Positions 27,652-52,190 of a stretch of 64,000 nt of DNA are shown here, one piece after another. The stretch covers positions 82,678-146,677 of the forward strand of contig JAKMXF010000357.1 in NCBI GenBank assembly GCA_024704765.1. The letters run 5' to 3'. Within the stretch, counting starts at the first letter, position 1. The number at the start of each line of letters is the position of its first letter. The position numbers and the translations under genes are program-made. The notes under the pieces were generated by a model. That model did not search any database and had not been told where the DNA came from. It was given only the letters and a program-made list of their open reading frames with translations. Source of the stretch: Oopsacas minuta. Its lineage: Eukaryota; Animalia; Porifera.

Positions 27652-28740
27652 TCATGTTGCATTAATTTTGTTAACATTCAAATTGGCTTGAAGTAGAGGT
27701 TCCTTCTCGATATTTTTATTTGTAAATGAACATGTCTTCCCAGGAATTCTATACAAAACATAATGCTGAACTACAAAAAGTATATCGAACAAAACTGAGA
27801 ATAGACCCAGACCAAATTTGGTCGGGTCTCCAAAAATAGACCCCCAGTCATTATTGTTATAAGAAACAATAAACATTTGAAGAATGCTCAAAGAGCCTCC
27901 AGTGAAGTCCAACAACACATTTCCAATGCTCCAACCTATTGTAGATTTTCGTTTAAAATTCATATAAGCTTGGGGCACGTACTTAATAAGCGTGATGAAG
28001 AGCTTGATGTAGGAAAGTACATAAAGAAATACCAACCAAGTGGTCTTGCCAGCAATAGCAATTATACCAGCTATTGTTACAATCAGAAAAAATGCGGATA
28101 GGAATGTAACAGCAATATATGAAATCCTCTGTCCATTTCTCTCAAAACAAAAACACTGAAGAATCGTGAACAGAGTTATCAAGACTGCGTGTACTGCAAA
28201 TATAACGTCATTTAACTTTACTGGGTTAACACCACCTCGGTGCTGAGAGAAATAAATATCTTGAATTTCAGAAGACCAATATAAACAAGAATTGAATAAA
28301 GCGTAAAATGTAAATCCAAGGATATTGTAGGCTAAGAAGTCAAAATTAAGTCCAACAACGCTCCTGCGATAGAAATTGAGGATAACCTGAGGGTAGAATG
28401 AAATTGACCATGCTAAGAAATAACACCATCCAATTACCATAGAGAGTATTTCTAAAGCTGGAATGTGAACAACAGAAAAATGTATAAATTGTGTAGCCAA
28501 TGTGGATGAATTAATAGAATAAGTAGTAGATCCCACGTTTTCAGCAATATATCCTACTGTACTAGAGTTTAAGGATGGGAAGAGGGTTAAGTGAGATTGA
28601 TAGAGGAAGGTAACATTATTGAATGGAGGAACTTCGGTGATATCAACCTCGGTTGGAATTGAAACGTTGTAATACAAAGTAAAATTACCATGATCCCCTA
28701 TTGAAAGTAGTGGAACTTGAGAAGTATATAAATGCGACAT
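27652..28740 (-). CDS. CTNS: Cystinosin (lysosomal cystine/H+ symporter, two PQ loops); a 5' exon may be missing
   Basis: IGWCYFLAWSISFYPQV, RRSVVGLNFDF, IKYVPQAYMNFKRKSTIGWSIGNVLLDFTGG, GDPTKFGLG, FDILFVVQHYVLY; N-glycosylation-rich N-terminal region. Confidence 0.96.
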   Translation of the reverse strand: MSHLYTSQVPLLSIGDHGNFTLYYNVSIPTEVDITEVPPFNNVTFLYQSHLTLFPSLNSSTVGYIAENVGSTTYSINSSTLATQFIHFSVVHIPALEILSMVIGWCYFLAWSISFYPQVILNFYRRSVVGLNFDFLAYNILGFTFYALFNSCLYWSSEIQDIYFSQHRGGVNPVKLNDVIFAVHAVLITLFTILQCFCFERNGQRISYIAVTFLSAFFLIVTIAGIIAIAGKTTWLVFLYVLSYIKLFITLIKYVPQAYMNFKRKSTIGWSIGNVLLDFTGGSLSILQMFIVSYNNNDWGSIFGDPTKFGLGLFSVLFDILFVVQHYVLYRIPGKTCSFTNKNIEKEPLLQANLNVNKINAT

Positions 28741-30449: not shown

Positions 30450-31770
30450 AAAATAAGTTTGGGAAAGATATCTCATCTGGTAACATAAGAGATAGAACAA
30501 TTTGATTTCCAGATATCAATACTTGCATCATCTTCCATGTATATCAATGTGAGCTCAACTAATATTTTTCTAGCTGGATCGTGTACAAGTAGATTCGCCA
30601 ACTGATCATTATCTTCAATAGCAAACAGAATCTTCCAAAGAGTTATGACAGAGCTAAGAACAGGCTCAGATGGATATTTGAGCCCCCTCGATCTGTTAAT
30701 TGCAAGAGCTTGAATTGAGAAATTGAATCACTGTCAGGATTAAATTCTTTATCATAAGTTAGCGTATCAGTGCACAATCTACACTCTTGAAACCCTTTCA
30801 AGAATTTATAGACCGAATATCCTCCGATAAAAGCTAACGACTGGAGTATCTGCTGAGTGCATTCATTGATAATACATCGCTAATTCCATCAAGATATGGC
30901 TCAAGATCTATTTGGTCATCACTAGAAATAGTAGAGGGTGAATTCAAAGATTTGACAAAAGTATGTATGGATTGAGAAGAGTCCTGTTGGTCAGAAACAT
31001 TTTTAAAATGTTAGAGAGCTTAAGATTACGCTAGGATTCAAGAATTTGAATGTAGGAAATATGATAATTCGAACCACCTATCATACGATAGATTCCAAGT
31101 GATGTTCCAATGGGTCTGTTTGCAGAAATGCAGACAAAACATAAGAGAATGCACATGACTCAGTTAGTTAGTTTGTTATCTGTCCTAAAGCAACACAAGG
31201 GTATCTCAAACTAGTATACGTTTGCTTACTCAATCTACCCGATTTGCCAAATCTAGTAGGATCAAATGAGTGAGGCACCCTAGTCCCCAATTTGCCACTC
31301 AGAGAAAATAGTTTGATAAGATTTACATTCAAAGGATAATTGTCAGTAAAATTACCTGTACACGTAAACCACAATTCTCAATATCAATGATACACTCATT
31401 GATGATGGGTAATAGCTTTTCAGCGGAAATAGATCCACATGGTAATAAACGTGAAACACAAGACCATTTCTTATGTAAGCTAGACACCATTACCGCAAAC
31501 ACAGTTCTGTTTAGGTCCTCTGGGTCCAAATTAGGAGCAAAGATTTTCCCTCCTTTATAAGTAATATCAGATTTAACATGTATTTCATCCATTTGAACTA
31601 AAATATTTCTCTCCAATGAACTGAGGAAGAAGTAGCTTGGGAGAGATAGGTAGAGAAATCGTTTTCAATGCCAAACGAAGAATACAATGTATTTAATGTC
31701 TGAACATGCAATAGAGAAAGATACTCTAAACCCTGGAGATATGCATAACATGTTGACATTTAAGGACTTT
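30450..31770 (-). pseudogene. P-element/THAP9-like transposase remnant
   Basis: LVQMDEIHVK..Y.GG, FAVMVSSLHKKWS (31329-31616), and LTDRGGLKYP near 30670. Boundaries are approximate. Confidence 0.8.
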
Positions 31771-34350
31771 TTTTTAAACTTTATATTTGCTCGCTCCAAT
31801 CTCTAAACAGTCCAACAGAAAGGCAGATTTATCGATTGGCGCTTTGTGCAAGATTCCACTAAAAGAACCCTTGTTGATGATCGCCTTACACACTTGTGAA
31901 GTAACTCGATCGTAAGAATTGTTAGATATTAATTCTAAAGCCAGAGCAACTAGTTATTTAGGCTAGACATTTTCTCTTTCAGCTAAGAAATGAATATGGT
32001 CTAAAAGAATGATCAGTCTAGATCTGGAAGTTTGAAGATTGCAATCAAGTAAATGCTTTCTGGAATCATGGACAATTTCTTCAGAGAAATTTCGACTTTC
32101 AGAAATAGAAACTTTACGAAAAGGTTCTAATCCAGGATCGAGTGAAATTCTCTTCTTTCTCGGAATGAAAGTTGATAGAGGTGTAGTATATGAATGGAAG
32201 GTCAAATTCTCCCAGGTCTCAAGATCACTCTTCTTCCGTAATACTCTCTGGATGATATAAGCGACTTGAACTTATATAGAATAGTATCATGTTCTTCCTG
32301 TGAAATATTCTTATCATCAATAAGATACTGCGTAGTGGCTTTAGGGCTTTTGCCCATTGAAATATAGCTAACATATGCTTCTTTGTTGGTCACAACAGAG
32401 GCCATTACTTCACTAAGAGCTATTATTAGACAGAAAAAGATTAAAATTATTTTCGTGCATCATCTACATTTGCATGAGGGCAAGAATATATAGAATTTAC
32501 TTGAATTTCAAAATAATCCTAAAAATACATTTTTCCGATTATTTGTCCGGTCCAAGCATTGATGTACTCAAAAATATATTTGGTACAATTGCAGAATCTT
32601 ACACCCCCCAACTTTTTTAATGTGGTCAAAAATCCCTATATGCACCGTTCAAGAACTCGTTGAGAGAAGTTGATAGAGCTAAAGAAACCCAAAATTGGAT
32701 TAAAATTGACAAAGTTACGAAAAATTTACTCTCTAAGCCAAATCCTATGGGGAAAATTGTATTACTCACTATAGTCATAGGAATGCTCATACTGTTGATA
32801 TTGCGGTTATACACGCTTGTTACTCTACTCTTTCATGCTCATCTGTTTGCTATTCAGTGTATTTCACTGCAGGTAATTCTTGTTACTTTAAAGGAAAGTT
32901 GGTTATTACATAATTCTGTCTGCAACACTAAATATACAATGCAACATTTCATTTCATATTATGCATGCAACTAAATTGCATCCTGTATGTGAAGTCGTTC
33001 AAACGTACCATACTTGCCAACTGTTCCGTTGGTTGGCGGGACACCACGATTACTCGCCCCGAATATGTGTTGACTGCCAATGAGGCTAATGTCCAGCCAA
33101 AACTTGACAAAACCCTTAATTGTCCCTCTATTTTGTAGTCCAGTCTAATACAAATATACTGCATTCGACGATGTCCCGCTCAATTAGCCCCTTCTGTCCC
33201 GCATTTTATCTTCACTCATGTTGGCAAGTATGGGGGTTGACACTTGTCCTGTAATACTCCGATAATGTTTAGCCAGTGCAGAGCAAAAGTATCAAGTTTT
33301 GGATAGCTAATATAATACGGGTGGTATTTCTTGCCTGAACCAAATGTACGGGGTCAAATGTCTATTATAGATAAACTTGAGCAAGTGTAATCAGTTTGTA
33401 ACTGCAACACATTCTCATTATAACGAAGTGTTCTGGACTGGTACGGAACCCGGTTACATTTCGTGATCTGCAGCATTAAGATATATGCGGAGTAAGATCA
33501 ATACTTTCAAGCTGGAGGAGGTTTGTAAATCACTTTGTTATAGCGTGAGTTTAGTCATATAATTGATGTTAGCTTATAACGGAAGTTTACAGTACTGGGC
33601 CTTATGAGGTCGTGTAACAGGTTCGGCGGTCGCTCCGAACCAATAATTAGCAATGTATATTAATGGTGAGATGTGATGAATGCTGCAACAGTAAGTTTGT
33701 GATTCCTGCGTCCCTACAATGCCAGTATTATTAGACAGTCAACTCCGCTTAATTAGGACAAATTTAGGTAATCGAGTGAAATTAGTAACTCACTCAAGAC
33801 GATTTTCTCTTGATTTAGGAAGTTGTAATAAGCTACGTACTAGGTACATCGCCTAATTTGGGATTAATGTGGCCAAATCAAATTCTATTTACTAGTTATT
33901 GTTATCGGAAGACAATATAACGATCCGAATGAGAAAGTTATTTGATTATGGGATTATTTACATAAATTTTCTTTACAACCAACAATCACCTAAAATATGG
34001 TAAATATGCTTGAGATTAAACATGAGAAGTGTGGTAAAAATATGTGGTTTCAGATGTAATTTCTATTGTATAGATTTGTTGATGTGTTCATAGTTATACC
34101 AGTATCTATTACATACAAAATTTAGTATAATTGGAATGCTGTTTGCTGGTTACTGAATTGAACAACAAATGGTTTAGGAAAGTGGCATGCAAACCACATG
34201 TAATTATTACCTATACTTAAAGAATACATTCTAAACGATCATACAATGTATTTCAATCAATCTTAAGTCAAGTATAAAAGGAATATCAGGGAAATATAAC
34301 TAATAAATCCTAATTATTCGAGTTGTGATATTTCTATTATAAAACCCTTA

Positions 34351-35277
34351 ATGGCAGTTGCTCCATCGTTTCAAACTCTGCTGGTTCCTATAATATTTCC
34401 AGTTATTGAAGAAATGACCTTAAAACAACTTTTTCGTAATATCACTATTGATGAAGATACTTGTATAGCATGGCTCAAAAGTAACGGACTTTTAGCTACC
34501 GGGATGATGTGCAAATGCGGTAGAATTATGAGACCCGGAACATTTTCAGATATTGCAGATGGATAGGGGTGGAGGTGCCCGGAAAAGTCATGCAAGAAAT
34601 TCGCTTCGATGAGGATTGGCTCATTCTTTGAAGGTGCTCATATACCGTTAACTGAGTTGGTAGAATTTCTCTATTTCTGGGCCGATAATCTTCAAACTAC
34701 TGCCTTTTTACACAAGAATCTGGGGTGGGGAGAGCATACTATAACAGACTGGAAGAACTTCCTCAGAGACCTATGTGTTGAAGAATTTTTAGCCAATCCT
34801 CAACCAATTGGGGAAATAGATGAATCAAAGTTTAGATATCGAAAGTATTCAAGAGGTCGTATGCTATCAGGTCAATGGGTATTTGGAGGAATAGATAGAG
34901 AGACAAAAGATATCTTTATGATACCTGTTCAAGACAGGTCGGCTGCAACATTAGTCCCTCTCATCCAGAGATATATTCTTCCGGGCACTACCATACTTTC
35001 TGACGAATGGGCATCGTATAATTCTATCCCCGCTGCAAGTTTTCAGCATCTCACCGTCAACCATAGTCTCAATTTTGTTGACCCTACTACAGGTGTATAT
35101 ACGCAAACAGTTGAGAGTACATGGGGTGGTGCGAAGAAACGGCTGAGGAATTGCATGACTACTAACCCCATACTTTTAGATACCCACTTATCTGAAGTTT
35201 GTTGGCAGAAGAAATATGGAGAAGCTAGTTTCTCCAACCTTATCATGGAAATAAGGAAACAATATCCAGTTGTCTAA
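34351..35277 (+). pseudogene. Merlin/ISXO2-like DDE transposase with an in-frame TAG at 34564-34566
   Basis: Zn ribbon CKC...WRC..C; EIDESKF; WVFGGIDR; SDEWASY; VNHSLNFVDPTTGVYTQTVESTW. Confidence 0.92.
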
Positions 35278-35645
35278 CTGTACCATACTTCTGCTTTGGT
35301 GTTTCTTTTGTAGCAGTACTTGTTATATTGTAGATTTGTAGTTAAAGTAGTGTATAGAAAGCTCAATACTAATTAGTTACTTCAAATATAACGACCACCC
35401 ATAGTATTATATCCAGCTATGGGGGTGTCATATATTTAATATTCTGTCCACTATCATAAGTAGAAACCCATGAAAACTTTGTTCCAACATTACTAACGCA
35501 CCTGGAGAGAAGCTGGATCATAACTATGCGATTAAATAGTACATGAATTGTTTCTAACATTGATATGAACACAAACGAACGATCAAAATTGGTTTGCCTT
35601 GGCCGGAGTAATACAAATTAAACTACCATTTTAGGAAACAGAATA

Positions 35646-36340
35646 CAGTAGAACCTCCGAGATCCGGACAGTCCCGTCCGAATAGTGTCCGGATCTCGGA
35701 TTTTCATTTAGTATCAAATACAAAACGGTCAAGCCTACAAAATTTCTACTCTCTGAGATCCGGACATTATCCATTTATTTTTCACCCATAATCAGATTGA
35801 AATAAATTACTTCCAATTTCCAATTGCTCTTTAGAGGTAGTAGATAGCACATCCTCATCAAATAATGAATAGGGAGAGTTTACAGATTTATTTTTGGAAA
35901 TGGCTCTTTAGAGATTAATGAAAATTGGCAGCAACCACATAAGTGGCTTGATGAAGATGACGATGCAGGATACTAACTTTTAGACGATGAAGAAATTATC
36001 TCAGAAGTTTTAGCTACGAATCCTGACTTTAAAGAAGACACTACTGATCCTAGACCTTGTGTAACCGCAGCACAAGCATGTGAATACCTGGAAACCGTGT
36101 TAGAATGACTAGAGTCCCAAGGGGATACCCGGATAGAACATTTGCTTCTAGTAAAGAATGGAGAAACAGGGCTGCTGAAAAACGAGTAAAAACTACTAAA
36201 CAGACATCATTATTGCCTTTTTATAGTTATTTCTTTTGTTTTATTTGTACGATTCGTGCTGAATATTTTCACTGATAATATTATTTCGTAGAAAATCATG
36301 TCCGGTCTAGGGAGGTGTCCGGATCTCGGAGGTTTTACTG
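35646..36340 (+). mobile_element. Tigger/pogo-type internally deleted element nested in Merlin
   Basis: 25-bp TIR CAGTA(G/A)AACCTCCGAGATCCGGACA with TA flanks; residual C-terminal coding WLDEDDDAGY*LLDDEEIISEV. Confidence 0.9.
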
Positions 36341-38494
36341 TATATGCAAATATATGTGTCATATCGGGAATTCCATTAACTAGGTCGAATTATCGAGGTG
36401 CCATAGTATAAAATATGAAATGAAATGTTGCATTGTATATTTAGTGTTGCAGACAGAATTATGTAATAACCAACTTTCCTTTAAAGTAACAAGAATTACC
36501 TGCAGTGAAATACACTGAATAGCAAACAGATGAGCATGAAAGAGTAGAGTAACAAGCGTGTATAACCGCAATATCAACAGTATGAGCATTCCTATGACTA
36601 TAGTGAGTAATACAATTTTCCCCATAGGATTTGGCTTAGAGAGTAAATTTTTCGTAACTTTGTCAATTTTAATCCAATTTTGGGTTTCTTTAGCTCTATC
36701 AACTTCTCTCAACGAGTTCTTGAACGGTGCACATAGGGATTTTTGACCACATTAAAAAAGTTGGGGGTGTAAGATTCTGCAATTGTACCATATATTTGTG
36801 CACCCCGGTGCATGTCTCAAAATTGGTGTATAATTTCAAAAAAGTAAGCACTATAAGTGATTAACAATAAATTATCGTCCTCTTTTGTCACCTGATAGAT
36901 GCAGCACTCCAAACACTATATTAAAACTAAAATATTTCACTCCAGGCCTTTAAAACTAGACAGCCAACAAAATATTTTGGAAACAATGATACTTGTAATA
37001 ATTGCATAAACTGATCTAATATAAGAAATACGTCAAATTGATGATTAATTACAAACGTTATACAGTATATATTTGGAAGAAAATCGTTGCTAAGGTAGTT
37101 AGGTATTTACTCTTGCGATTAGCTATTCAAAATAATCTAAAATATGCTTACTTTAGCTCGCTGTAATCGAAATTCCTATGGGTCATACATACAATCGTCA
37201 ATATTTTCCTACTAATTCGACGATGGAGATTCATAAAAACGTAGTTAAATTCGTAATTGAAATTTTGCCTAATACGCCATATCGGCACACTGTGAAACAG
37301 TTTGCTTGTGATCATAGGGTAAATAGATAAGAAATATGAAATAACTATCGAATACGAGAAAAGCCCCACACCTGACTGAGGTACTCAACAACTTTCAGGT
37401 GAATCGATGAGAAATTGACTGATAAATTAGGTGTTAAGTTGTGTACAAATTCCCTATAGAGATTTTGTATTACAAAATTTGCAACCTCATTGTGAGGAGA
37501 GTAGGTGTGATCAAGATTAATTATTGAATATGAGCAAAGCTCTACACGATACTATGGTTACATCCGAGATTTCATCTCGATTAACTGAGAGGTGACTGAG
37601 ATATAATGCGTTTAGTCGTCCTCAAACTTGCTGCTACAGCGCGCTGCTAACTTCACTCTCGTACCAAACAGTACACTTATATTCAGAAAGGCAATTCAAA
37701 TTGGGAAAACAAAAATATACAATAAAAGTAGAAAACTACTAGTGACCCTGGTTTTTAATCTTAGGGACGCCCTGAATATAATTATGATATATTCACAACT
37801 TGATTGTATCAAGTAATGATATAATGTATTTGGATACTCGAGTCATGTTAATTGGTTCACCGGATCAAGAATTTATTGATCTGGATCCGGGATCCGGTGT
37901 ATGCCTACTTATAAATTCCAGAACTTTGCCTGCTAACCAGGTAGATTCAAAAACTCATTTGGATAGATCTCACTTGGTTCCAGCTAAACAATTGAGGGGA
38001 GGTTCAAGTTTACTATGTTTCTGAAATATATTTTATGCAACAACGCCAGTGAGATGTATTATGCTTACCCAACATGGATTGGGTGGAATAACATTTCAGA
38101 AATATAGCCCCACAAATCTACAAAATCATCAGCTTCCGAAAATTTTGCTTTCTTATTTTATTGTTTATAATACTATTGCATTTTAAAATCTACACGATGT
38201 TCCAGAAACCCAAGGAAAATTCAAAAGATCCCACCACTTTAACATTTTTCAGCTGTTTACAGTATATGTATCCCTTGGGGTTTGAGAAATACTCTCGGTT
38301 GTTTATTCAGATTCATTTTCAGGTAGGGCTAACCCCCCTCTGAGGGTGGATAGATGGAACACTGTGTTCCACACGACGAGATCGTGAGAGTTGAGAGCTG
38401 CTATGGAAATCCAAAAATACATTCAAACTAATTTTCAAGACATTTTATTTTTTCTTTCTCTACTTTAGCAAATTACATGCTATTGAAAGAACTC

Positions 38495-40500
38495 CACAGT
38501 GGCTTAGTAGTGAAGAATTAAGAAAATTTTATCTTAATGCTTTCATTCCCTTATGGTTTCATTTTGTTTCTAAACATTCAAGTAGCATCCATTCCAATTT
38601 TCGAATCATTTGGGAGCCTATTAGTTATGTAAATTTGAATCGAAACTTTGTGGTTTTTGATGCTGAAATGATCTTTTCGGAGAATTCAAAATATAAAAGA
38701 TTTTCCCAGAGATTCTGATTCTTTATAGAATACATTAGCGATCTATTGTTTCATCTATTCTAGACAATTTTGCTTGCTGATATCAAATTTTGTATCAGAT
38801 ATATCTAAACTGTGTACTTTTCATGTGAAGGGTTGTTGTACTCAGGGTAAAAAATGAATCTCATTTTTCCAAGCACAAAATTTTAAGAGTCTGAAAAGAC
38901 AAAGTCAAGGAACGTCAAAGCGAAAATAATACCAGTTGTTGTTTACAATTTTTACTATGTTATATGAAGATGACAGGCACCGAAACGGTGCGCAACTTTG
39001 ATTTTTTTGTCGCATTCCATTGTCTGTAATCGTTGCTATGGAAATTCCTGAAGTGATATCTGTAACTAAGTAATTGAATACCCATCTAATCTTAATTATT
39101 CTTGGGAATTACTGTACAAAATTAAACATATAAATGTGTGTATATACGTGTACTTATGTTTTCAATCATACACCTTTATTTCTCATAGATAATTTATCCG
39201 TGATCAATGGCTGAACCAATTGCTCCGATGACTTCCCTCGAATCCCGTCTCGATTTAGCGAGAATCCTGAAAGCAAATAGCGATTGCGTCCAAACAACTC
39301 TCTGTTATCTTAGCAATCTCCATTGATTAGACCATGCCAGACAGGCTAAACTTGAATTGATTCTACCTAGAATACGAGATATGATTAGAACTTCAAAAAA
39401 ATCACTTGAATCTTTGTATGGAGATTGGTGGCATTCTGAAATTTGCTCAGAATTAATTATAGCTTCACAAGCCCCCCAAAAGCTAAGTCGGTGCGCCAAA
39501 AGAAAGAACTTATCAATCTTTCACTGCCACATTAGCGTTCCCGGATCTCTAGTGTCCTTGAGTCTATCAGGTCCATCTCGGTAATCAAAAAAACTTTTGA
39601 AATTACAATTGCAGCTCCTGCTTTGCAATTGTTGTGCAATGAGGAAGACAATCGAGAAGTTGCAAGGGTATCTAAATCAATTGTTCAAGGAAAATTCTCT
39701 GGTCAACTCGGGCGTGCATCCAAAAGTAAAGAATTGGATGTGGACAAGGCATTATTTCTTTTGGATCTATTAGACATTGGGAAGAGTAAGTATACTCTAC
39801 TACGACAACTTTTGTTATCTAATGAAATTCACTTCCCTACATATCAGAGGGTGGCCGATCATAGAAATAATTATGTACTACGAAGTATGATTCAACTATA
39901 CCCGAATCCTACAGCCCCAGTTGGGGTATGTGTGCCACACGCTCAATTTGTCTACCATACATTTTGGTGAATTATGTCCACTCTACCGTCCCCTTCAAAT
40001 GAGAATTTTCCTCTCCGATTTCAGATTGCTGATGGTTTAGACGGATCTGGAAAGCATACCGTATATAATCAACCGAATACGAATAGGTCTACCAAATCAC
40101 AACTGCCCGAATTCTCCATTCCCCCAACTTCCGATTTTCCTTCTTGCTGCCATAGAAATCATGACAATATTCGCCAATTTATGAAAGATATCATCAATCC
40201 TGAAACAGATCAAATGAAGGACCAAGGTTTCTATTTTGCCGATGATAAACATATATTTGTCGATGCTGTCCGATCAATGCTTGATGGTAAAATGGCAAGT
40301 ATTCTCTCAGGAACAGGAGGTGTAAGGTGCCAACTATGTACTGCACGCAGAGAGAACTAAAAGATCGTGATTAAATTTTGCAAGGTTATCCCATCAATAG
40401 AAACATTTTGCCCGAAGAGCTAAGTGCTGTAGACATACTGCAGCAGATTTATTGGATTCATCTATTGATAATATGGTTAAGGGCCTTATTGTTGATATGA
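38495..40500 (+). mobile_element. RAG1-like transposon copy B (5' two-thirds, degenerate)
   Basis: Putative 5' end CACAGTG-N15-ATTAAGAAAATT at 38495 (tentative). Coding remnants SKKSLESL, KELINLS..RSRI, EEDNREVARVSKSIVQGK, IADGLDGSGKH, SMLDGKMASILSGTGGVRCQLC. Confidence 0.85.
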
Positions 40501-41492: not shown

Positions 41493-41635
41493 GACCCTAC
41501 CTAGGCATGACGGGATCCTAGTCAGGATCTGATGCACCAATTATGAACTTGAGTATCCAAACGTTTTTCAAATCACCGAAATTCTGAATGTATCATAAAT
41601 ATATTATCTTAATACCATATATTTAAAAATGAGTA

Positions 41636-41645
41636 GCGCATGCGC
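41636..41645. promoter_or_regulatory. NRF1-type palindrome GCGCATGCGC in the left inverted repeat
   Basis: Sequence GTAGCGCATGCGCTGC; 223 bp upstream of the ATG at 41869. Function is inferred. Confidence 0.6.
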
Positions 41646-41868
41646 TGCATTAATATATAATTGGAATTTTGGAAAAAAGTAGCCTCTCAAATTACATCCT
41701 ATTATAGTGTAATTAAATCCGCAGGTACTGATATTTAGTTTTGAGTTTTGTTACTTATTTCTACTTCCTTTATTAGCAAAATCCCTAAATATGTTTCCCA
41801 ATTAACTTTATACTTTACTCAATTAGTGTTTCCTCTTGATTTCCATTCTGTACCCTTGATTAGCCAAA

Positions 41869-43586
41869 ATGCCAACGATACCCAAATTGACAAAGTCTAA
41901 TGCTATAATGGTACTGACAGACATATTGTCTGAGTTTCGTTCAGTAACAGGTGAATATGCCGGAGCTGTATTTTCATGGCATGGAAAGCTTGGCTCTTTG
42001 GGTCCAGAGAAATTTCAAACCTATATCACTGGGAATAGCGATGAAATATCAAGAACTCTATTGACTAACCAAATATCTACAAGTACGTCAGCGTCATCAA
42101 AGCCTGTGCGTGATCACGAAATCCTCAAGCTATTAGATGGAGATATATCTGGCTATAATGTACAGGGACTGCGAAGACTTGTTTCTGCGATTATAGAAGT
42201 GTCAACTGGTAAGTCAACGGTGTGAATTTATATAATTATATGGGTCACTGATTTTATATCTCTGTATTTTAGGGAAAGGTATGTTTTTTTTGGAATGATC
42301 CTTCCCTCAAACCACCTTTTTGGCCCGAAAGAGTCCCTTTCGAAAACATAAAAAGCGCATGTAAGATTCATCTGCGTATGATAATAGAATCATATAAGAA
42401 TTAATCTATGAAAGCGCGAGTTTCAGCTCGCCCTCAATCTCAGAAGTCTCCAAGCTCTTCTCAAGCATCGCGACATGATATCTACCGTGACCGATCTAGA
42501 TCTCCTCTTGATTTCGCTAGAGATGTACTATACCAAGAGTCTGATGTAGATACTAGTGATGATTCCTTCGATGAGGTTTTTCAGCAACCCGTTATCACTT
42601 CGAACAAACCTATTTCAGATCCTCAAACACCCACCCCAACATCCAGTCTGGTGACATTACTCGGAGTTAAGCCATTGGATCCTATTCAAATAATCACTCC
42701 TCCCATTAGTTTAAATGAGAAAAACTTGTCAATTTCCGAATTGTCAAGTCGTAATACTTTTCTAACAGGCATCACCATTAATGCATTCTGTGTAAGTTTA
42801 TCATACATTGAAATTCAATCCGTTTTCTTAGCAAATATTCTCATACCATATATGTATTTGTAGACATTACTGAAGAAGAATTTCCCCCATTTACACGGAC
42901 TTCAGGACACTATTCTTTCCGAAGTGAGTTTCTCGGTTTAAATTTTTGAATTATAAATCAATATTTGATATTCAATTAATTATTAGAATAGTCAATTCGT
43001 GAAAGCTCCTCGTCCTAGTATACAGCTGCATCACGATGGCGCACTTCACTGGGTTTGCTCCAGTATTGATGTTAAAGGGCATGTAACTTTATATGATTCA
43101 CTATCTACTGGGAGAATATCTGGTGAATTAGCTGTGCAATTGGCATTTCTACATGGGAATGATGCTGATCATGAGCTGAAAGTCGCCCTTGCTCCTATTC
43201 AGCAGCAAAGAGGTGGGGCGGATTGTGGTTTATTTGCAGCTGCAGTCTGTTTGACAATAGCAACGGGAGGCAACCCAACCCAAGTATACTGGAAACAGTC
43301 AAGAATGAGATCTCACCTAACTGATTGTTTCAACAGCGAAATTTTAACACCCTTTCCTAAGATAGAAAGCATAGTATTACGATCTCGCCTGACTACAAAT
43401 CTAGGGACAGATTTAAAGATAAAGTTATGGTGTTTGTGTCATCTACCCAGTTGCGCGTCAAAAAATATGATTGAATGTCCCAAATGCCTTAAATGGTTCC
43501 ACAAACCATGTGTAGGACTTGAAGATATTGACAAAGATATCGATAACTTTTATTGTCACAATTGTCGTGAGTCTCCTAACATATAA
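41869..43586 (+). pseudogene. Four-exon gene of about 505 aa: NRF1/Ewg-like DNA-binding domain, S/P-rich linker, Ulp1-like cysteine protease, PHD finger
   Basis: Exons 41869-42208, 42273-42791, 42864-42923 and 42987-43586, all GT-AG and phase-consistent once one extra T in the T8 run (42284-42291) is removed. In-frame TAA at 42402-42404. Motifs: LRRLVSAIIEVSTGKGMFFWNDPSLKPPFWPERVPFENIKS; LLKKNFPHLHGLQDT; HWV, YDS, QQQRGGADCGLF; WCLC..MIECPKC..WFHKPC..FYCHNC. Confidence 0.85.
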
Positions 43587-43593
43587 ACTATTT

Positions 43594-46500
43594 TCATATA
43601 TTATTATTTTGTGATAGAATATGTGGATTCAAACATGCTAGAAAATATCTTGTAGTGAAGAATACATTATCAATACGCATGTATGCGATTTGTGTTGCTA
43701 TCCTTGTTAGTGATGAAAACAACTGCTCGCAAATTTGTGAGTTTAGCTTTTTCATCTCGTCAGTCTGAATTGATCTCAAAGAATAAGAGGGATTGCACTT
43801 GTGGTTTGTAGAATGGAATCGATTAATCAGAAATGTTGTCCTACGAAATACTTTGGGGTCCCTATATAAAAAATCACAAATAAATTTCTATTTGAAACCT
43901 CGGCTAATTATCATTTATACCCAATTTGTTATGTGCACTTACCTTTTCATACATGTTTTGTGTAAGTTGCAAGCATTATCGTAGATGATCACTTTTGGCT
44001 GTTCTCTGAATATGGTCATTAACAGATTATAAATTACAACTGTAGATTCGTGTTGTCTGAGGATTTGGAAACCATAACAAATCCTGTGTTTACAAGCGAT
44101 TGCTACTATTCCGGGGGGAAACCTTTTGTGAGTTGGAAACTTTTTGTGACACGGTTCAGCTGACTCAACTTCTAGATTTTCGTATACTGGCAACCTGTAC
44201 AATTATAGTAGAATGGTAAAATATAAAAAAAGTTGAATAGCAATTAGTATTTTCAGTATAAACACAATTACAAGTTTGAACTTATATGTAGTTTGTTGTG
44301 AATGCTGGGAAATAATTGTAATAGTTTTCGCTTTGTGGAGAATATTCCACTAATTTTCTTGACGCTCTACTAAATAAACTCTCTATTTGTGTCAGGATTC
44401 TTTTCAACAGCGGGAAAACTTTGAGATATAAAGTGACAAACCCTGTGCATGTGATGTCTTCATTAGGTTTGATAGAATTGAATAAGATATCTAATGTATA
44501 CATCTTCTGATATATTGAATTTAAGGAATCTTCACTTGCTGATTTTCCATTGACAAGAAGAGCTATTGCTTTTCGTTCATTCGATTCCAGCAGAGAGAAT
44601 TGGAATACTCCTGATATTGGATCTGTATGGCAAAGGAGTTTTATGACTTTCTTAACGTGTATATATTCTTCACTTATAGCCACTAAATTTCTGTCCTAAT
44701 GGAACTAAATAAAATATAATCAGCCATTTCTTTATGAGTAGACTTCAATAGGTCTTTTAGCGTATTTTCTGTCAAACCTTCAGAACAGTATTTAAGGAGT
44801 TGTTTTCTAATTGCTGTGTCGGGGATAAAAACACGATCTGAAAATGGGATCATAGGGTATTGCTGATCCTGATCGAATTTTGCATCCACTTCTAGCACCG
44901 ATTTCATTGTTCCCATCGCTATGCCATCTAAAATTATCACATCGGGATGATCTTTACACTTTGACATATGTAGTTCGAGTCATAATCTATGTCTACTGTT
45001 CTTAGATAGGCGTTCCATGCCTGATAAACAATGTGATAATGGAATGTATTCGTTCTACCCATTCTGATAAGCTTCCTGTTCTTGGCACTAAAAAGTAAAA
45101 CGAAGAATTAGATTGTATATATAGGAATTTTAATTTATCAAGAATATGATTTTAAACAATACATACCTCAAGTAACCGTACAAAGTATTTCTAGACATGG
45201 TCATTAACTCGCTATAATCATATAACAAACTGTAATGAACAAAGTACTTGTTGTTGATGTTTAACAGTAAACTGTTCTGACCTTCGAAGACTGCCAAGCA
45301 ATTGCAAGGTCCACTGCATCTTGAACTGTAAACTATATACTTACAATATAATTACTGAGTTACTAAGCACAGGCAAATTTAAGGAGGGAGTAAATTGGGA
45401 CGAGTTCATTGCAATCGAATGAACAATCTTATATGCAAACCAAATATTTATTGAAATTCCTTTATAATTGCAAAGACTTGTTTTCAACGGCTAAATACGT
45501 AGGATAACCCACCATACTAAATTAAAATTGCGACCGAGCAAATGGTTCATTGATGATAAATATATAACTTTGTAATCTTTGAATTCATTAATATCATTTT
45601 CTAAATAGATAACTATTCCAACCTTCTCTAGTTTAAGCTTCTCCTCTTCACTGAATTTGAAACCATAGTCACATAATTCCTTTTCAGGATACATATTTAA
45701 AGGTAAATTGATGCCATGGCAGAGCTAGTGGTTGTAAATTGCTATTTGGCTTTCATCTAAATTGAATGGTATTACTCTTGTTGATATCGTGTTATATTCA
45801 AACTGTTTCTGTGTATTTGATCCAGTATTTTCGAGAATATTATGGAGTCTAGAATGTTGTTTGCACTTTGAAGAACAAGAACAACATAACCACCTATCAT
45901 TATTCAATTGGAAGTTGTGAAAAGTATCATCTGTCAACGGAAAGATATCTTTAGGACTTGGGGAATAATATATTATATCTTCTAGAATGTTTGCTTCACA
46001 AACTTGCAAACAATCATTTTGCGAACAGAGTTCAAATGCTTGATAATGAGAACAAGTATCACTATAACAATTGGCGCATAGATTGCTGTTTGTTTCAATT
46101 ATGATTTCCCTTTTGTTTAGTACAACGGTTCCTTGAAATACATAATGTTTAGTTTTGGTAGTGAGAATAGTAAATGTACAGTAGACTCCGATTAATAGGG
46201 TCACTTAGGACCAAGCCATTTGACCCGATTAACCGAAATAAATGTGTTGGGCCCTACGAACCGGAGCAGAGAGACAAACATGCTAACAGACAACAATAAT
46301 AGTGATAATAACGTATATTTACCTCGTGAGTGATCATAATCTGCAATTATAACATATTCACTATCGTCTAACTTATGTATGTGAGACTTCAATTATCAAT
46401 AGTTTTACATACTGGTCAATTATAGGCATTTCTACTTGTTTCATTTCTGGTTCTGAGAAGCAATCAGGTTGACACTGACTATGCGAAAATTATATTGAAT

Positions 46501-46731
46501 CAACAAGCAACTAAAGTTTGCTTGAAAGCATAAGGAATTAAGAATATAAGTATCACCTGGTTTTGACCATGTTGGCACATCTGATTCTATCAATTTAAAT
46601 GATTCACCTTCTGATAGGCATACTTTGTCGATGTCTAATGTGATGAAGCTGATATCTTCTTTCTCCGAGATTTTTCGTTTTTTTGGGTATATATTATCAG
46701 ATCCAGTTTGTGAAGTTACTTTTTCAGCCAT
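43594..46731 (-). pseudogene. Multi-exon CxC/KDZ (HMGXB3-like) transposase with several lesions
   Basis: ATG at 46731, NLS PKKRK, SWIM-like CANC..CSH and CSC..C..H, CNC..FEGQNSLLLN, C.KC..HPDVIILDG, CKHRICYGF..ES, IYDNACNLH, RDP..F..INRFH..NHKC, NSQICEQ. The last two exons, 43943-44194 and 43594-43861, join across a GT-AG intron; 5' exon structure is only partly resolved. Confidence 0.85.
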
Positions 46732-46932
46732 TTCCAAAATGAAATTATCTAACGAATGATACAAATTTATATATCTACTTCTATCATTATAAATGCACCA
46801 GCATTCCAATTACCGCTTGTCGTAATGTGGTTTCGAAACTTATCTAATCACATTCAATTCAGCAGTTTGGGTAACTATGGTTGAAATGATAACGCGTATC
46901 TATAAATATGACTTACCAATAATCCTAATGTA

Positions 46933-46942
46933 GCGCATGCGC
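46933..46942. promoter_or_regulatory. NRF1-type palindrome GCGCATGCGC in the right inverted repeat (within the 16-bp perfect palindrome GTAGCGCATGCGCTAC, 46930-46945)
   Basis: Lies between the divergent starts of the transposase (46731, minus) and COPS2 (47264, plus). Function is inferred. Confidence 0.6.
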
Positions 46943-47263
46943 TACTCACTTTTAAATACCTCCTTAATACATATATACCTACGTTCAATTAGCAATTCTC
47001 AGTAATACCTTTAGGCAATAAATAATTAATTTTCAAAGCTAGAATCTTATTCAATTGTTAGGTGAACCAGAAATTGTTTTTACCCAAGAATATTTATGTA
47101 GGCAATTAAGCATGTACCGGATTCTGGATCCGGATCCGATCTGCTTGATCCGTCCAACCCGTATCCTACCGGATCCAAAAATGATCTGGTGCATGCCTAA
47201 CCCTGCCAGTGCATGTATTATCCTCTTTGATTTATATTGTGTGTGGTTTTATAGTAGATAATT

Positions 47264-47548
47264 ATGTCTGATGATGAGCTAATGGACAATGATGATTACG
47301 ATTTAGAATATGATGATTCTGAACCCGATGTTGAAGCAGACTTGGAAAATCAGTATTACAATAGCAAGACTTTAAAATGTGATGACCCAGACGCTGCTTT
47401 GACTGCTTTTCGACGTGTGTTACAGCTTGAAGAAGAGAAGGGCGATTGGGGCTTCAAGGCTCTGAAACAGATGATGAAATTAGAGTTTCATCTTGGAAGG
47501 TTCTCTCAAATGATGGAACATTATCAGCAATTGCTGACTTACATCAAG
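47264..47548 (+). CDS. COPS2: COP9 signalosome subunit 2, coding exon 1 (95 codons)
   Basis: [49 protein letters not shown], then donor GTAATA at 47549. Confidence 0.96.
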
Positions 47549-48256
47549 GTAATATTTGGATTGTTGGGCCTTCTAGTTGTATTGTTAATTAAGAGATCTA
47601 CTATTTGAACTTGACAAACTTGTGGCCACAAATGTATTTGTGCAGCCCTTGAACTGGTAATCAAATGGCACAGTAAGATACGATTATGAATTTGTCGCAT
47701 ATTCAAACATCATACTTCAACTATTAATTGAAGCCACTTCTAATTATTGGATCTGGACAAAATTGTATCGTTCGTTAGAGGAGACAAGAAAGTTGATGTT
47801 TTCGATCGAATATTTTTGAATTTCAGGTTGTTTGCCATTTGTCTTCACAAAAGTGAATTTTATTGGCCTAATTGTACTGAAAATTTTAAAATATTATCCA
47901 TGGTCCATCTAAATGAATTATTATGACCTGTCTTCGCTTAAACAGCTAAGCTGTTTCTCGATGAATCTCAGCACTATTGATAAATACCCAATTATGATGT
48001 ACAATCGAAAATTGTGTGAACTTTCTATTTTGTATATTAATGTAATATATAATGAGTTTACATTTTGCACAATCGAATCATTTGGCATATTTGAGGGGTA
48101 CCTGTGATTCGCATTTCGAGCCTCTAACACGTATAATGTCTGAACAATTGCCAAGAATGTGATTTTTAAAATCCATAACGTGACAATTACGTCATATTTT
48201 AGTCATAGGTATAAATTTTCCTCGAACTTATCCGACCTAGACACAACACGGATAAT

Positions 48257-50949: not shown

Positions 50950-52190
50950 GAATGGTGATTATTTATCAGTATAACAGCTTACATTGTCACCTTTATACTG
51001 TAATTTCAACATAACCTTATGAGATCTTGTTGAATTGCATCATCTTGTTATGCTGGAAACTAAGGCCTTCACAACAATGAAATTTTGACAAAATCGAACC
51101 ACAGCCTCATCTAATATATATAAGACCAAAAAGGCCCGAGAACATGCCCTACATCTGTCAATTGAAGTTTGAATAATTCATACTACCTGGATATAAGAAC
51201 TTTGCAAAGTTTCGTTCTGATATTTCACTCGTTAACTGAAATAAAGATTATTCGTGATGAGCTTGTATTTTGCATAGCAGCTGGCATATCGTACTATCAA
51301 CTAGTCCAGAGACAACTGAGCGTATCCTAGAAACAATTCAACATGTATATCCAGTCATTTTCCTCTAACTCTCGAACTTGCAGATGGTTTAGATGGATCT
51401 GGCAGCCACAGAATTTATAACCAGACACAAAGTAATCCGAATATAAGTACAAAATCTTTCATTCTCTTTGTTTTTAAAGCTATATCGATTTCAAACAAAC
51501 ATGGTGATCGCCTTTGGTCAATTCCTTCTGCAAATTCACCTTTCCCAGCAAGGTCAGTAACTCTGATATTTCAGAAAGAAAACTATGACAACGTGAATAC
51601 ATTATGGAAGAAATGCTCAATGCAAAATCTAGCATGCTAGATAGTTTAAGAATAGAATAGCCCCAGGAAAAGTTAATGTTAATATTATAAGTTCAATCTT
51701 TGATGGAAAGATGTCTGGAATCTTAAGTAGAGCTGGAGGGGCATATTGCCAACTCTGCACTGCAACGAAAGTTCAGTTGAAAGCTATAGATCTAGTTAAA
51801 TCTGGTTTCTGCATAAACCAAACAATTTATGATGCCAAACAAATCTTTCTAGATATTAATCAGGAAGAGTATCTTAAATTAAATTCTGATTTGAGGTTTG
51901 GCCTGACACATACACCAGCTTCTGACAAGAATATCTTATCTGCCTCCTCTTCATAGTTATTTGTGTGTCTTTCGCTGGCTTATGTTATTGATATATCATT
52001 TGTATGGCGGAATGAAGAAATGGTTGCCTTCACATCATCAAGTTAAAACTTCAATGCATCGAATGCGTAATCTTTTGTTTGAGACTGGGTTTCAAATAGA
52101 TTATCCATCCAGTGATGGCGGTACCACTACCACTGATAATATAGCAAAAATGTTTTCTTAATGAAATAATTTTATTGCTTTTCACTTGCT
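50950..52190 (+). pseudogene. RAG1-like transposase remnant, copy C (central region), in COPS2 intron 1
   Basis: LADGLDGSGSHRIYNQ, LWS..SANSPFPARSVTLIFQKEN, SIFDGKMSGILSRAGGAYCQLC, RFGLTHTPA, DGGTTTTDNIAKMF. No ends were found. Confidence 0.85.

Follow-up and report, generated by a model that had tools for sequence, protein, structure and literature searches.

A 64,000-nt stretch of the genome of the glass sponge Oopsacas minuta (assembly GCA_024704765.1, contig JAKMXF010000357.1, positions 82,678 to 146,677 of the forward strand; hereafter the window, with a G+C content of 35%) contains a segment, at 42987-43586, that raises the question of whether a DNA transposon carries its own reader of chromatin. 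From the letters alone, this segment had been predicted to encode a partner protein in which a Ulp1-like protease is joined to a PHD finger that likely reads histone H3 trimethylated at lysine 4 (H3K4me3), in a division of labor resembling that of RAG2. We find that the segment forms exon 4 in the accessory gene of a DNA transposon of the KDZ type (Kyakuja-Dileera-Zisupton; Zisupton-like), which carries two genes. The identity of the domains and of the transposon is close to certain, and the whole explanation, including the mechanism proposed below, appears to us moderately probable.

Proteases of the Ulp1 type have turned up in several superfamilies of transposons over about two decades, with no function put to the test. 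The gene described here makes a tidy case, since it stands apart from the transposase gene and combines a protease, a PHD finger with an easily assayed ligand, and a putative DNA-binding region with a likely site in the ends of the element. Binding of H3K4me3 and cleavage of SUMO by this protein, if true, would hint at how some DNA transposons select open chromatin or evade silencing that depends on SUMO, and would amount to a second, independent case of the RAG2 logic. Otherwise, the window would contain one more instance of a known accessory module, in a decayed copy.

Protease and PHD finger of exon 4

The exon is open throughout and follows an AG acceptor at 42985-42986; its borders coincide exactly with the span given in the original prediction. 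It contains an open reading frame (ORF) of 195 residues (42999-43586, positive strand), the first 125 of which make up the catalytic half of a cysteine protease of clan CE. The histidine of the triad (His17) lies in the motif LHWV and the aspartate (Asp33) in YDS, whereas the oxyanion glutamine (Gln70) and the catalytic cysteine (Cys76) share the motif QQQRGGADCG, with the glutamine six residues before the cysteine. Among 26 aligned relatives, the histidine was kept in 19 of 20 sequences, the aspartate in 24 of 24, the glutamine in 25 of 25, and the cysteine in 25 of 25. The tryptophan that follows the histidine (W18) was found in 20 of 20 aligned relatives.

The exon 4 ORF by itself scored slightly below the cutoff for the Pfam domain Peptidase_C48 (PF02902; E value of 1e-3; 19.3 bits versus 20.7), with the match covering positions 92 to 190 of the 217 in the profile. 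The weakness of this single-sequence score is due to the exon having just the C-terminal half of the domain, with the first half encoded in earlier exons. A profile of 16 relatives matched the Ulp1-like SUMO protease 6dg4 at an E value of 3.8e-7, and the active-site motifs were aligned. The AlphaFold model of exon 4, built on 26 relatives, had a predicted local distance difference test score (pLDDT) of 89 and a predicted template modeling score (pTM) of 0.81. When the first part of this model was submitted to Foldseek, yeast Ulp1 (2hkp and 1euv) and SENP1 were returned with a probability of 1.0 over approximately 120 residues. Thus, the predicted His-Asp-Cys triad and oxyanion glutamine are confirmed by alignment, profile, fold, and conservation, and exon 4 encodes half of a clan CE protease of the Ulp1/SENP type in which the triad is complete.

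The order of the triad, the position of the glutamine, the tryptophan after the histidine, and the fold are all shared with the SENP/Ulp1 enzymes (MEROPS family C48, clan CE). The window domain differs from them in being compact, at approximately 165 residues as opposed to 220, with a short N-terminal lobe and a phenylalanine in place of the first tryptophan. As for the substrate, the same 16-relative profile also matched SENP8 (E value of 3e-5), bacterial clan CE enzymes (5e-4), and SENP1 (2e-3). The intact natural relative P0028 (residues 70 to 311), which is 37% identical to the window protein, yielded a predicted fold with a pLDDT of 86.5. Its 24 best Foldseek matches were all eukaryotic SUMO proteases (SENP5, SENP3, SENP1, SENP2, and Ulp1), with an E value of 3.6e-8 for SENP5 and target TM scores of 0.5 to 0.64 for the SENP/Ulp1 matches, whereas NEDP1 (1.6e-4) and bacterial clan CE enzymes ranked lower. 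This ranking of predicted folds tilts the substrate guess toward SUMO without settling it.

The last part of the exon encodes a PHD finger with all of its zinc ligands (C145, C147, C160, C163, H168, C171, C186, and C189). The Pfam PHD profile gave a marginal match to the ORF (E value of 6e-5; 23.4 bits versus a cutoff of 24). A phmmer search of the PDB returned PHF2 (3kqi) as the best match, at an E value of 8.9e-12 and 42% identity and with the same C4HC3 spacing, followed by PHF8, BPTF, CFP1, EBS/SHL, KDM7A, PHF23, DIDO1, and ING proteins. At least the first 14 of these matches (PHF2, PHF8, BPTF, CFP1, EBS/SHL, and KDM7A) are to proteins that we take to be H3K4me3 readers. Foldseek matched the last part of the exon 4 model to the fingers of PHF2, DIDO, ING2, PHF13, BPTF, ING4, and TAF3, mostly in structures crystallized with H3K4me3 peptides.

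In the alignment with PHF2, W144, S151, M157, and W166 of the window protein correspond to Y7, Y14, M20, and W29, the residues of the methyl-lysine cage. The tryptophan, methionine, and tryptophan that had been placed at cage positions of a C4HC3 finger are therefore real. Comparison of the 26 relatives, which take in sequences as low as 28 to 37% identical, revealed an aromatic residue (W, F, or Y) at the first cage position in 22, a methionine at the third in 24, and a tryptophan at the fourth in 25. The cage of ING2 consists of Y-S-M-W, ING-type readers also have a serine at the second position, and the pocket of RAG2 is formed by three residues, Y415, M443, and W453. Given these serine-containing and three-residue cages, the predicted pocket of the window protein would be compatible with H3K4me3 binding.

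Sequence and predicted fold place the finger with those of PHF2, PHF8, BPTF, and ING, a class in which the solved members bind H3K4me3. The two domain identities in the original prediction are supported: the protease belongs to clan CE and is of the Ulp1/SENP type, and the PHD finger falls, by sequence, into the class of H3K4me3 readers. We infer from homology that the module may bind H3K4me3 and remove SUMO. A literature search found no paper on a transposon Ulp1-PHD module reading H3K4me3, and the view of a Ulp1-linked transposon PHD finger as an H3K4me3-class reader appears to be new. A match by chance or an artifact of reading frame can be rejected: the E value (9e-12), a ratio of nonsynonymous to synonymous divergence (dN/dS) of 0.13, and conserved synteny place the result far beyond chance.

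Transposon and accessory gene

The element that contains exon 4 spans 41616-46962 (5,347 bp) and carries two genes (Table 1). A perfect 8-bp direct repeat lies four bases beyond each of the 33-nt terminal inverted repeats (TIRs); an 8-bp target-site duplication (TSD) is a reported hallmark of Zisupton/KDZ elements (PMC12730594). The left terminus, CATATATTTAAAA, is kept in three other copies (L008, L009, and L010), and the TSD of the full-length copy L009 is ambiguous. The number of palindrome units varies among copies, with one per end in the window and two to three in L003 (268-366 and 12070-12138) and L009 (13970-14040), the right end included. The terminal tetranucleotides are CATA on the left and GAGG on the right (read inward) in the window and GAGT on the left in L003.

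The gene on the negative strand encodes the transposase. The Pfam profile KDZ (PF18758) matched an 86-residue piece of it, encoded by the exon at 43939-44199, with an E value of 7e-4, below the cutoff; the homologous genes in O. minuta copies that are 95 to 97% identical carry PF18758. The suggestion of a partner protein held true, in that the gene containing exon 4 is separate from a KDZ transposase gene, is convergent with it, and lies with it between TIRs and an 8-bp TSD. The convergent stop codons are 7 nt apart in the window (43584-43596), approximately 60 nt apart in the nested L003 subfamily, and approximately 130 nt apart in L001, a divergent copy from another assembly. Because of the 7-nt spacing, the transcripts would overlap in antisense at their 3' ends if both genes were expressed, a possible source of double-stranded RNA.

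The exon models of the accessory gene were guided by annotated O. minuta proteins and comprise four exons with GT/AG borders. Exons were searched singly, and the annotated O. minuta proteins P0020 and P0040, together with the intact relative P0028, served as proxies for the spliced protein. Exon 1 is 48% identical to the L001 copy and had no Pfam match of its own. The start of exon 2 gave a weak but specific match to NRF1 (Pfam Nrf1_DNA-bind; E value of 0.0036), and human NRF1 (8k3d) matched its WNDPSLKPPFWPERVPFENIKS stretch with an E value of 0.022. The NRF1-type palindrome at the ends of the element is a likely type of site for this NRF1-like region. At the start of the protease, ...TFLTGITINAFC (end of exon 2) / TLLKKNFPHLHGLQDT can be aligned to the relatives' W-L-N-D...IN / GLQDT motifs. 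Exon 3 matches L001 and L002, and its junctions are those found in P0020 and P0040. Read from its sequence, the accessory protein of the family begins with a putative NRF1-like region for DNA binding, continues through an acidic Ser/Pro linker into a compact cysteine isopeptidase of the Ulp1/SENP type, and ends in a PHD finger.

The window copy of this gene is broken twice in exon 2. Following the common GGTATG, the run of thymines has a length of 8 in the window, 7 in L008, which is in frame, and 6 in L003, which is out of frame; L009 has GGTA followed by 6 thymines and is in frame. Further downstream, the window reads AAT TAA where the other four copies (L003, L008, L009, and L010) all read GAT TAC, for Asp-Tyr.

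Table 1. Coordinates of the transposon, its two genes, and the features of exon 4 in the window
Feature	Position	Strand	Description
Left target-site duplication CTTAATAC	41608-41615	.	Identical 8-mer at 46963-46970
Left terminal inverted repeat with palindrome GCGCATGCGC	41616-41652	+	33-nt repeat, 94% complementary, with 46926-46958
Accessory gene exon 1	41869-42208	+	ORF, GT donor at 42209; N-terminal part of putative NRF1-like DNA-binding region
Accessory gene exon 2	42273-42791	+	NRF1-like motif, Ser/Pro/Asp-rich linker, protease start; broken in window copy
T8 homopolymer	42284-42291	+	Throws exon 2 out of frame with exon 1
In-frame TAA stop in exon 2	42402-42404	+	Specific to window copy
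Accessory gene exon 3	42864-42923	+	20 codons, TLLKKNFPHLHGLQDTILSE; protease N-terminal lobe; AG/GT boundaries
Accessory gene exon 4	42987-43586	+	Catalytic half of Ulp1/SENP-like protease, linker, PHD finger, stop codon
Catalytic codons	His17 43047-49, Asp33 43095-97, oxyanion Gln70 43206-08, Cys76 43224-26	+	Alignment, profile alignment to 6dg4
PHD finger (C4HC3), cage-type W144, S151, M157, W166	43428-43565	+	Residues 144-189; phmmer to PHF2 3kqi
KDZ transposase gene, several exons	43594-46809	-	Convergent with accessory gene; damaged in window copy
Right terminal inverted repeat, one GCGCATGCGC unit	46926-46962	-	Pairs with left terminus
Right target-site duplication CTTAATAC	46963-46970	.	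Perfect 8-bp direct repeat

Selection on the module and its counterparts in other elements

The nearest named proteins are hypothetical proteins of O. minuta, with 85 to 94% identity. Copies of the element in the same assembly are 92 to 97% identical to the window over up to 5.3 kb. The divergent copy L001 has the same convergent layout, with amino acid identities of 47 to 66% for the accessory protein and 50 to 86% for the transposase. The layout is found again in a second KDZ subfamily (L003:983-6303), which is approximately 70% identical. A member of this second subfamily (L003:366-6817) interrupts the left end of a copy that belongs to the window's family; the PHD finger of the inserted member is in frame but lies after an in-frame stop codon.

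Exon 4 sequences of the window and L001 differ with a dN of 0.23 and a saturated dS of approximately 1.7, the source of the dN/dS of 0.13 given above. By parts, the ratio was 0.10 for the protease and 0.17 to 0.22 for the PHD finger. Ratios between close copies were higher, at 0.34 to 0.62, as expected from decay after insertion. Both domains are under purifying selection within the transposon lineage. That selection has kept the module through the history of the family argues against its being a mere passenger, and we consider it likely that the element needs the module.

The passenger alternative holds that the protease-PHD gene is a captured host fragment with no role in transposition, like the cargo of Pack-MULEs or the ULP genes of plant KI-MULEs. 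Capture of ULP-like genes by transposons is a known event (Hoen et al. 2006 and van Leeuwen et al. 2007, as cited in PMC2836005), and distant C48-PHD relatives occur in unrelated contexts, one after a pogo-like DDE_1 ORF (L006) and one near reverse transcriptase ORFs (L005). However, the gene has the same position and orientation in three diverged subfamilies, the low dN/dS is maintained over saturated synonymous divergence, the catalytic residues and zinc ligands are invariant, and an NRF1-like motif in the N-terminal region is matched by an NRF1-type palindrome in the ends of the element. Capture without function is very improbable. The linkage of the module to KDZ is established for the sponge lineage and L001 only; no KDZ was detected near the distant C48-PHD relatives P0028, P0033, and P0036 (28 to 37% identity). 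In the protein Atlas, nine clusters contain a PHD finger and Peptidase_C48 in proteins of 175 to 254 residues, and the clusters listed are commonest in cnidarians and chordates.

The protease might instead mature the element's own proteins, like the adenovirus or Polinton/Maverick protease, with the PHD finger only stabilizing the fold. Clan CE does include viral and Polinton processing proteases, as is generally known and as described for related elements in PMC2836005. Nevertheless, the element encodes no polyprotein, its two genes being separate and convergent; the leading fold matches are SENP and Ulp1 rather than adenain-type enzymes; and the cage residues of the PHD finger, which a purely structural zinc module would not need, are conserved. 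Such a role is hardly credible.

The pairing of Ulp1 and PHD domains in transposons has been known since 2010, when Bao, Kapitonov, and Jurka listed "Ulp1, PHD" for Ginger1-9_HM of Hydra and Ulp1 in Mutator elements of hydra, lancelet, and plants (PMC2836005). The published description, on which the comparison is based, indicates the same order of a Ulp1 catalytic domain followed by a PHD finger on a cut-and-paste DNA transposon of an early-branching animal. In Ginger1 and Mutator, however, the module forms part of the transposase itself (an integrase-like or MuDR-type DDE enzyme), whereas the KDZ element of the window carries it in a gene of its own, convergent with the transposase gene and with the module fused there to an NRF1-like region. 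With Zisupton and other KDZ elements, the window element shares a KDZ-type transposase, TIRs, and an 8-bp TSD. Accessory genes are also known from KDZ elements, for example TET/JBP in fungi (Kojima 2025, PMC12730594). It differs from Zisupton in having two genes rather than one long multi-exon gene, as well as a PHD finger, an NRF1-like region, and a hexactinellid host. Zisupton was reportedly named by Bohne et al. (2012) for "zinc finger / SUMO protease / transposon," because a splice isoform carries a Ulp1 domain; our literature search found no text stating that Zisupton carries a Ulp1 domain. What is new here is the location of the module in a separate gene of a KDZ element, its fusion to an NRF1-like region with the corresponding type of site in the ends, and the hexactinellid host.

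The PHD finger resembles those of PHF2, PHF8, BPTF, and ING proteins in its aromatic residue, methionine, and tryptophan at three cage positions and in its PHF2-like C4HC3 spacing. Unlike that of PHF2, it has a serine for Y14 and is joined to a protease rather than to a demethylase or remodeler. The RAG1/RAG2 and RAG1L/RAG2L (ProtoRAG) systems are likewise two-gene transposons with a noncatalytic partner whose PHD finger has an aromatic-Met-Trp pocket. Their transposase is of the Transib/RAG1 type, with no homology to KDZ, and the orientation of the genes and the extra protease and DNA-binding domains of the sponge element are further differences. RAG2 was not among the best 60 PDB matches of the window PHD finger in the phmmer search, and Pfam detected no Kelch domain in the exons of the partner gene. 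The resemblance to RAG2 is an analogy, functional at most, and not kinship. Of the predicted RAG2-like division of labor, the separate PHD-bearing partner gene stands; the split is not a fixed property of the module, as its fusion to the transposase in Ginger1 and Mutator demonstrates.

Proposed chromatin targeting and the site of insertion

For intact members of the family, we propose that the PHD finger would tether the protein, and hence the element or the transposase complex, to open chromatin marked by H3K4me3. The protease would act on the transposase or on factors of chromatin, repair, or silencing, stripping them of SUMO (NEDD8 or ubiquitin being less likely), and the removal of SUMO would favor transposition or counter SUMO-dependent silencing. 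On the strength of the homology, we regard the chances that the PHD finger of intact copies binds H3K4me3 as evenly balanced. Specificity of the protease for SUMO is plausible but is put forward more tentatively. It is doubtful that these parts constitute a full device in which the PHD finger would dock on H3K4me3 nucleosomes, the NRF1-like domain would hold the ends, and the protease would strip local SUMO, so that transposition would be both licensed and directed by a mark of active chromatin. Were such a device real, histone-mark-gated DDE transposition would have been invented independently of RAG and put to use again in Ginger1 and Mutator elements.

Several observations weigh against the mechanism proposed for intact members. 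In the window copy, the frameshift and the stop codon lie between the DNA-binding and protease-PHD parts, and the transposase gene carries window-specific deletions of 1 to 2 nt at 44687, 44962, 45117, 46478, and 46784. Exon 4 is uninterrupted in the window only, among five compared copies; a single 1-nt indel is present in the exon in L003, L004, L008, and L009 alike, although several of these indels sit in homopolymers and could be assembly errors. Of the two tryptophans that hold the Gly-Gly tail like a clamp in Ulp1/SENP enzymes, the one after the histidine (W18) is present, but the N-terminal one, in the Ulp1 W-L-N-D motif, is a phenylalanine in the window's subfamily, with tryptophan present in four of the six distant relatives aligned. 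The second cage position, aromatic in PHF2 (Y14) and BPTF, is Ser151 in the window, and the residue after it, aromatic in 18 of 26 relatives, is a cysteine in the window and its nearest relative. NEDD8-specific SENP8 and the bacterial clan CE enzymes score close to SENP1 in the sequence profile, and substrate specificity is therefore not fixed by the profile. Finally, only one of four inspected insertions, that of the window's copy, adjoins a clear host gene start, a count that comes from four or five loci in a gene-dense genome with no null model. The other inspected copies lie among RAG1-like, Tc1/mariner, hAT, and MULE genes or downstream of genes.

In all likelihood, the window locus yields no helper protein of full length. 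A start codon at 42408 (ATG), directly behind the stop codon, could in principle give a product with the protease and PHD finger only, and nothing supports such a product. The prediction of one protein that binds the ends, reads active chromatin, and removes SUMO thus survives as a putative design of the family and fails for the window locus itself.

Some of the same observations favor an alternative in which the module functions for the element without H3K4me3-guided targeting. In that case, the PHD finger would bind H3 that is unmodified or modified in another way, or a non-histone N terminus, as PHF2 does with VRK1, and the targets of the protease would be NEDD8, ubiquitin, or, once excision has taken place, SUMOylated repair factors. 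Insertions would then show no preference for promoters, and the logic would not be that of RAG2. Consistent with this alternative are the serine at the second cage position, the loss of the neighboring aromatic residue in the window's subfamily, the proximity of SENP8 and bacterial deubiquitinases to SENP1 in profile score, and the location of most inspected insertions away from gene starts. The PHD finger of PHF2 has also been solved with a non-histone peptide (7m10), and a role in transposition, perhaps via DNA repair, has been proposed for transposon Ulp1 and OTU domains (PMC2836005). On the other hand, three cage positions are kept in relatives that are only 28 to 37% identical, and the best sequence and fold matches are complexes with H3K4me3. 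The serine has its counterpart in ING-type readers, and the fold of the intact relative P0028 ranks SUMO proteases first. We consider this alternative rather unlikely and prefer the proposal that the module of intact copies is guided by H3K4me3.

The right end of the window copy lies 301 nt upstream of the ATG (47264) of the gene for COP9 signalosome subunit 2 (window 46963-47608; E value of 7e-33 to human CSN2). At this distance, an element with NRF1-type palindromes sits in the promoter region of a housekeeping gene. Although this insertion is in keeping with the promoter idea, it is one case only, from a compact genome, and the few insertion sites inspected exhibit no clear promoter preference. 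Promoter-directed insertion is an unlikely property of the family.

The window contains traces of other mobile elements. Two 356-nt inverted repeats that match perfectly (100%), one at 32605-32960 and the other at 36412-36767, enclose an ORF (34609-35277) for a DDE transposase domain of the ISXO2/IS1595 type (Pfam E value of 4e-16), and the stretch 32605-36767 looks like a very young Merlin/IS1595-like element. A fragment on the negative strand (31329-31616) encodes a TNP-like RNase H N-terminal domain of the P-element/THAP9 type (E value of 1e-6). By eye, the peptides ADGLDGSGKH.../...GTGGVRCQLCTARR, encoded in ORF fragments at 39623-40360 and approximately 51378-51423, look like catalytic motifs of RAG1/Transib; between these two loci, identity over 46 nt is 76%. 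Elsewhere in the O. minuta genome, the KDZ copies L008 and L009 adjoin genes with weak RAG1_RNase_H matches. The negative strand of the window also contains, at 27652-28740, an intronless ORF for a 362-residue PQ-loop (cystinosin-like) protein, with a Pfam E value of 2e-32.

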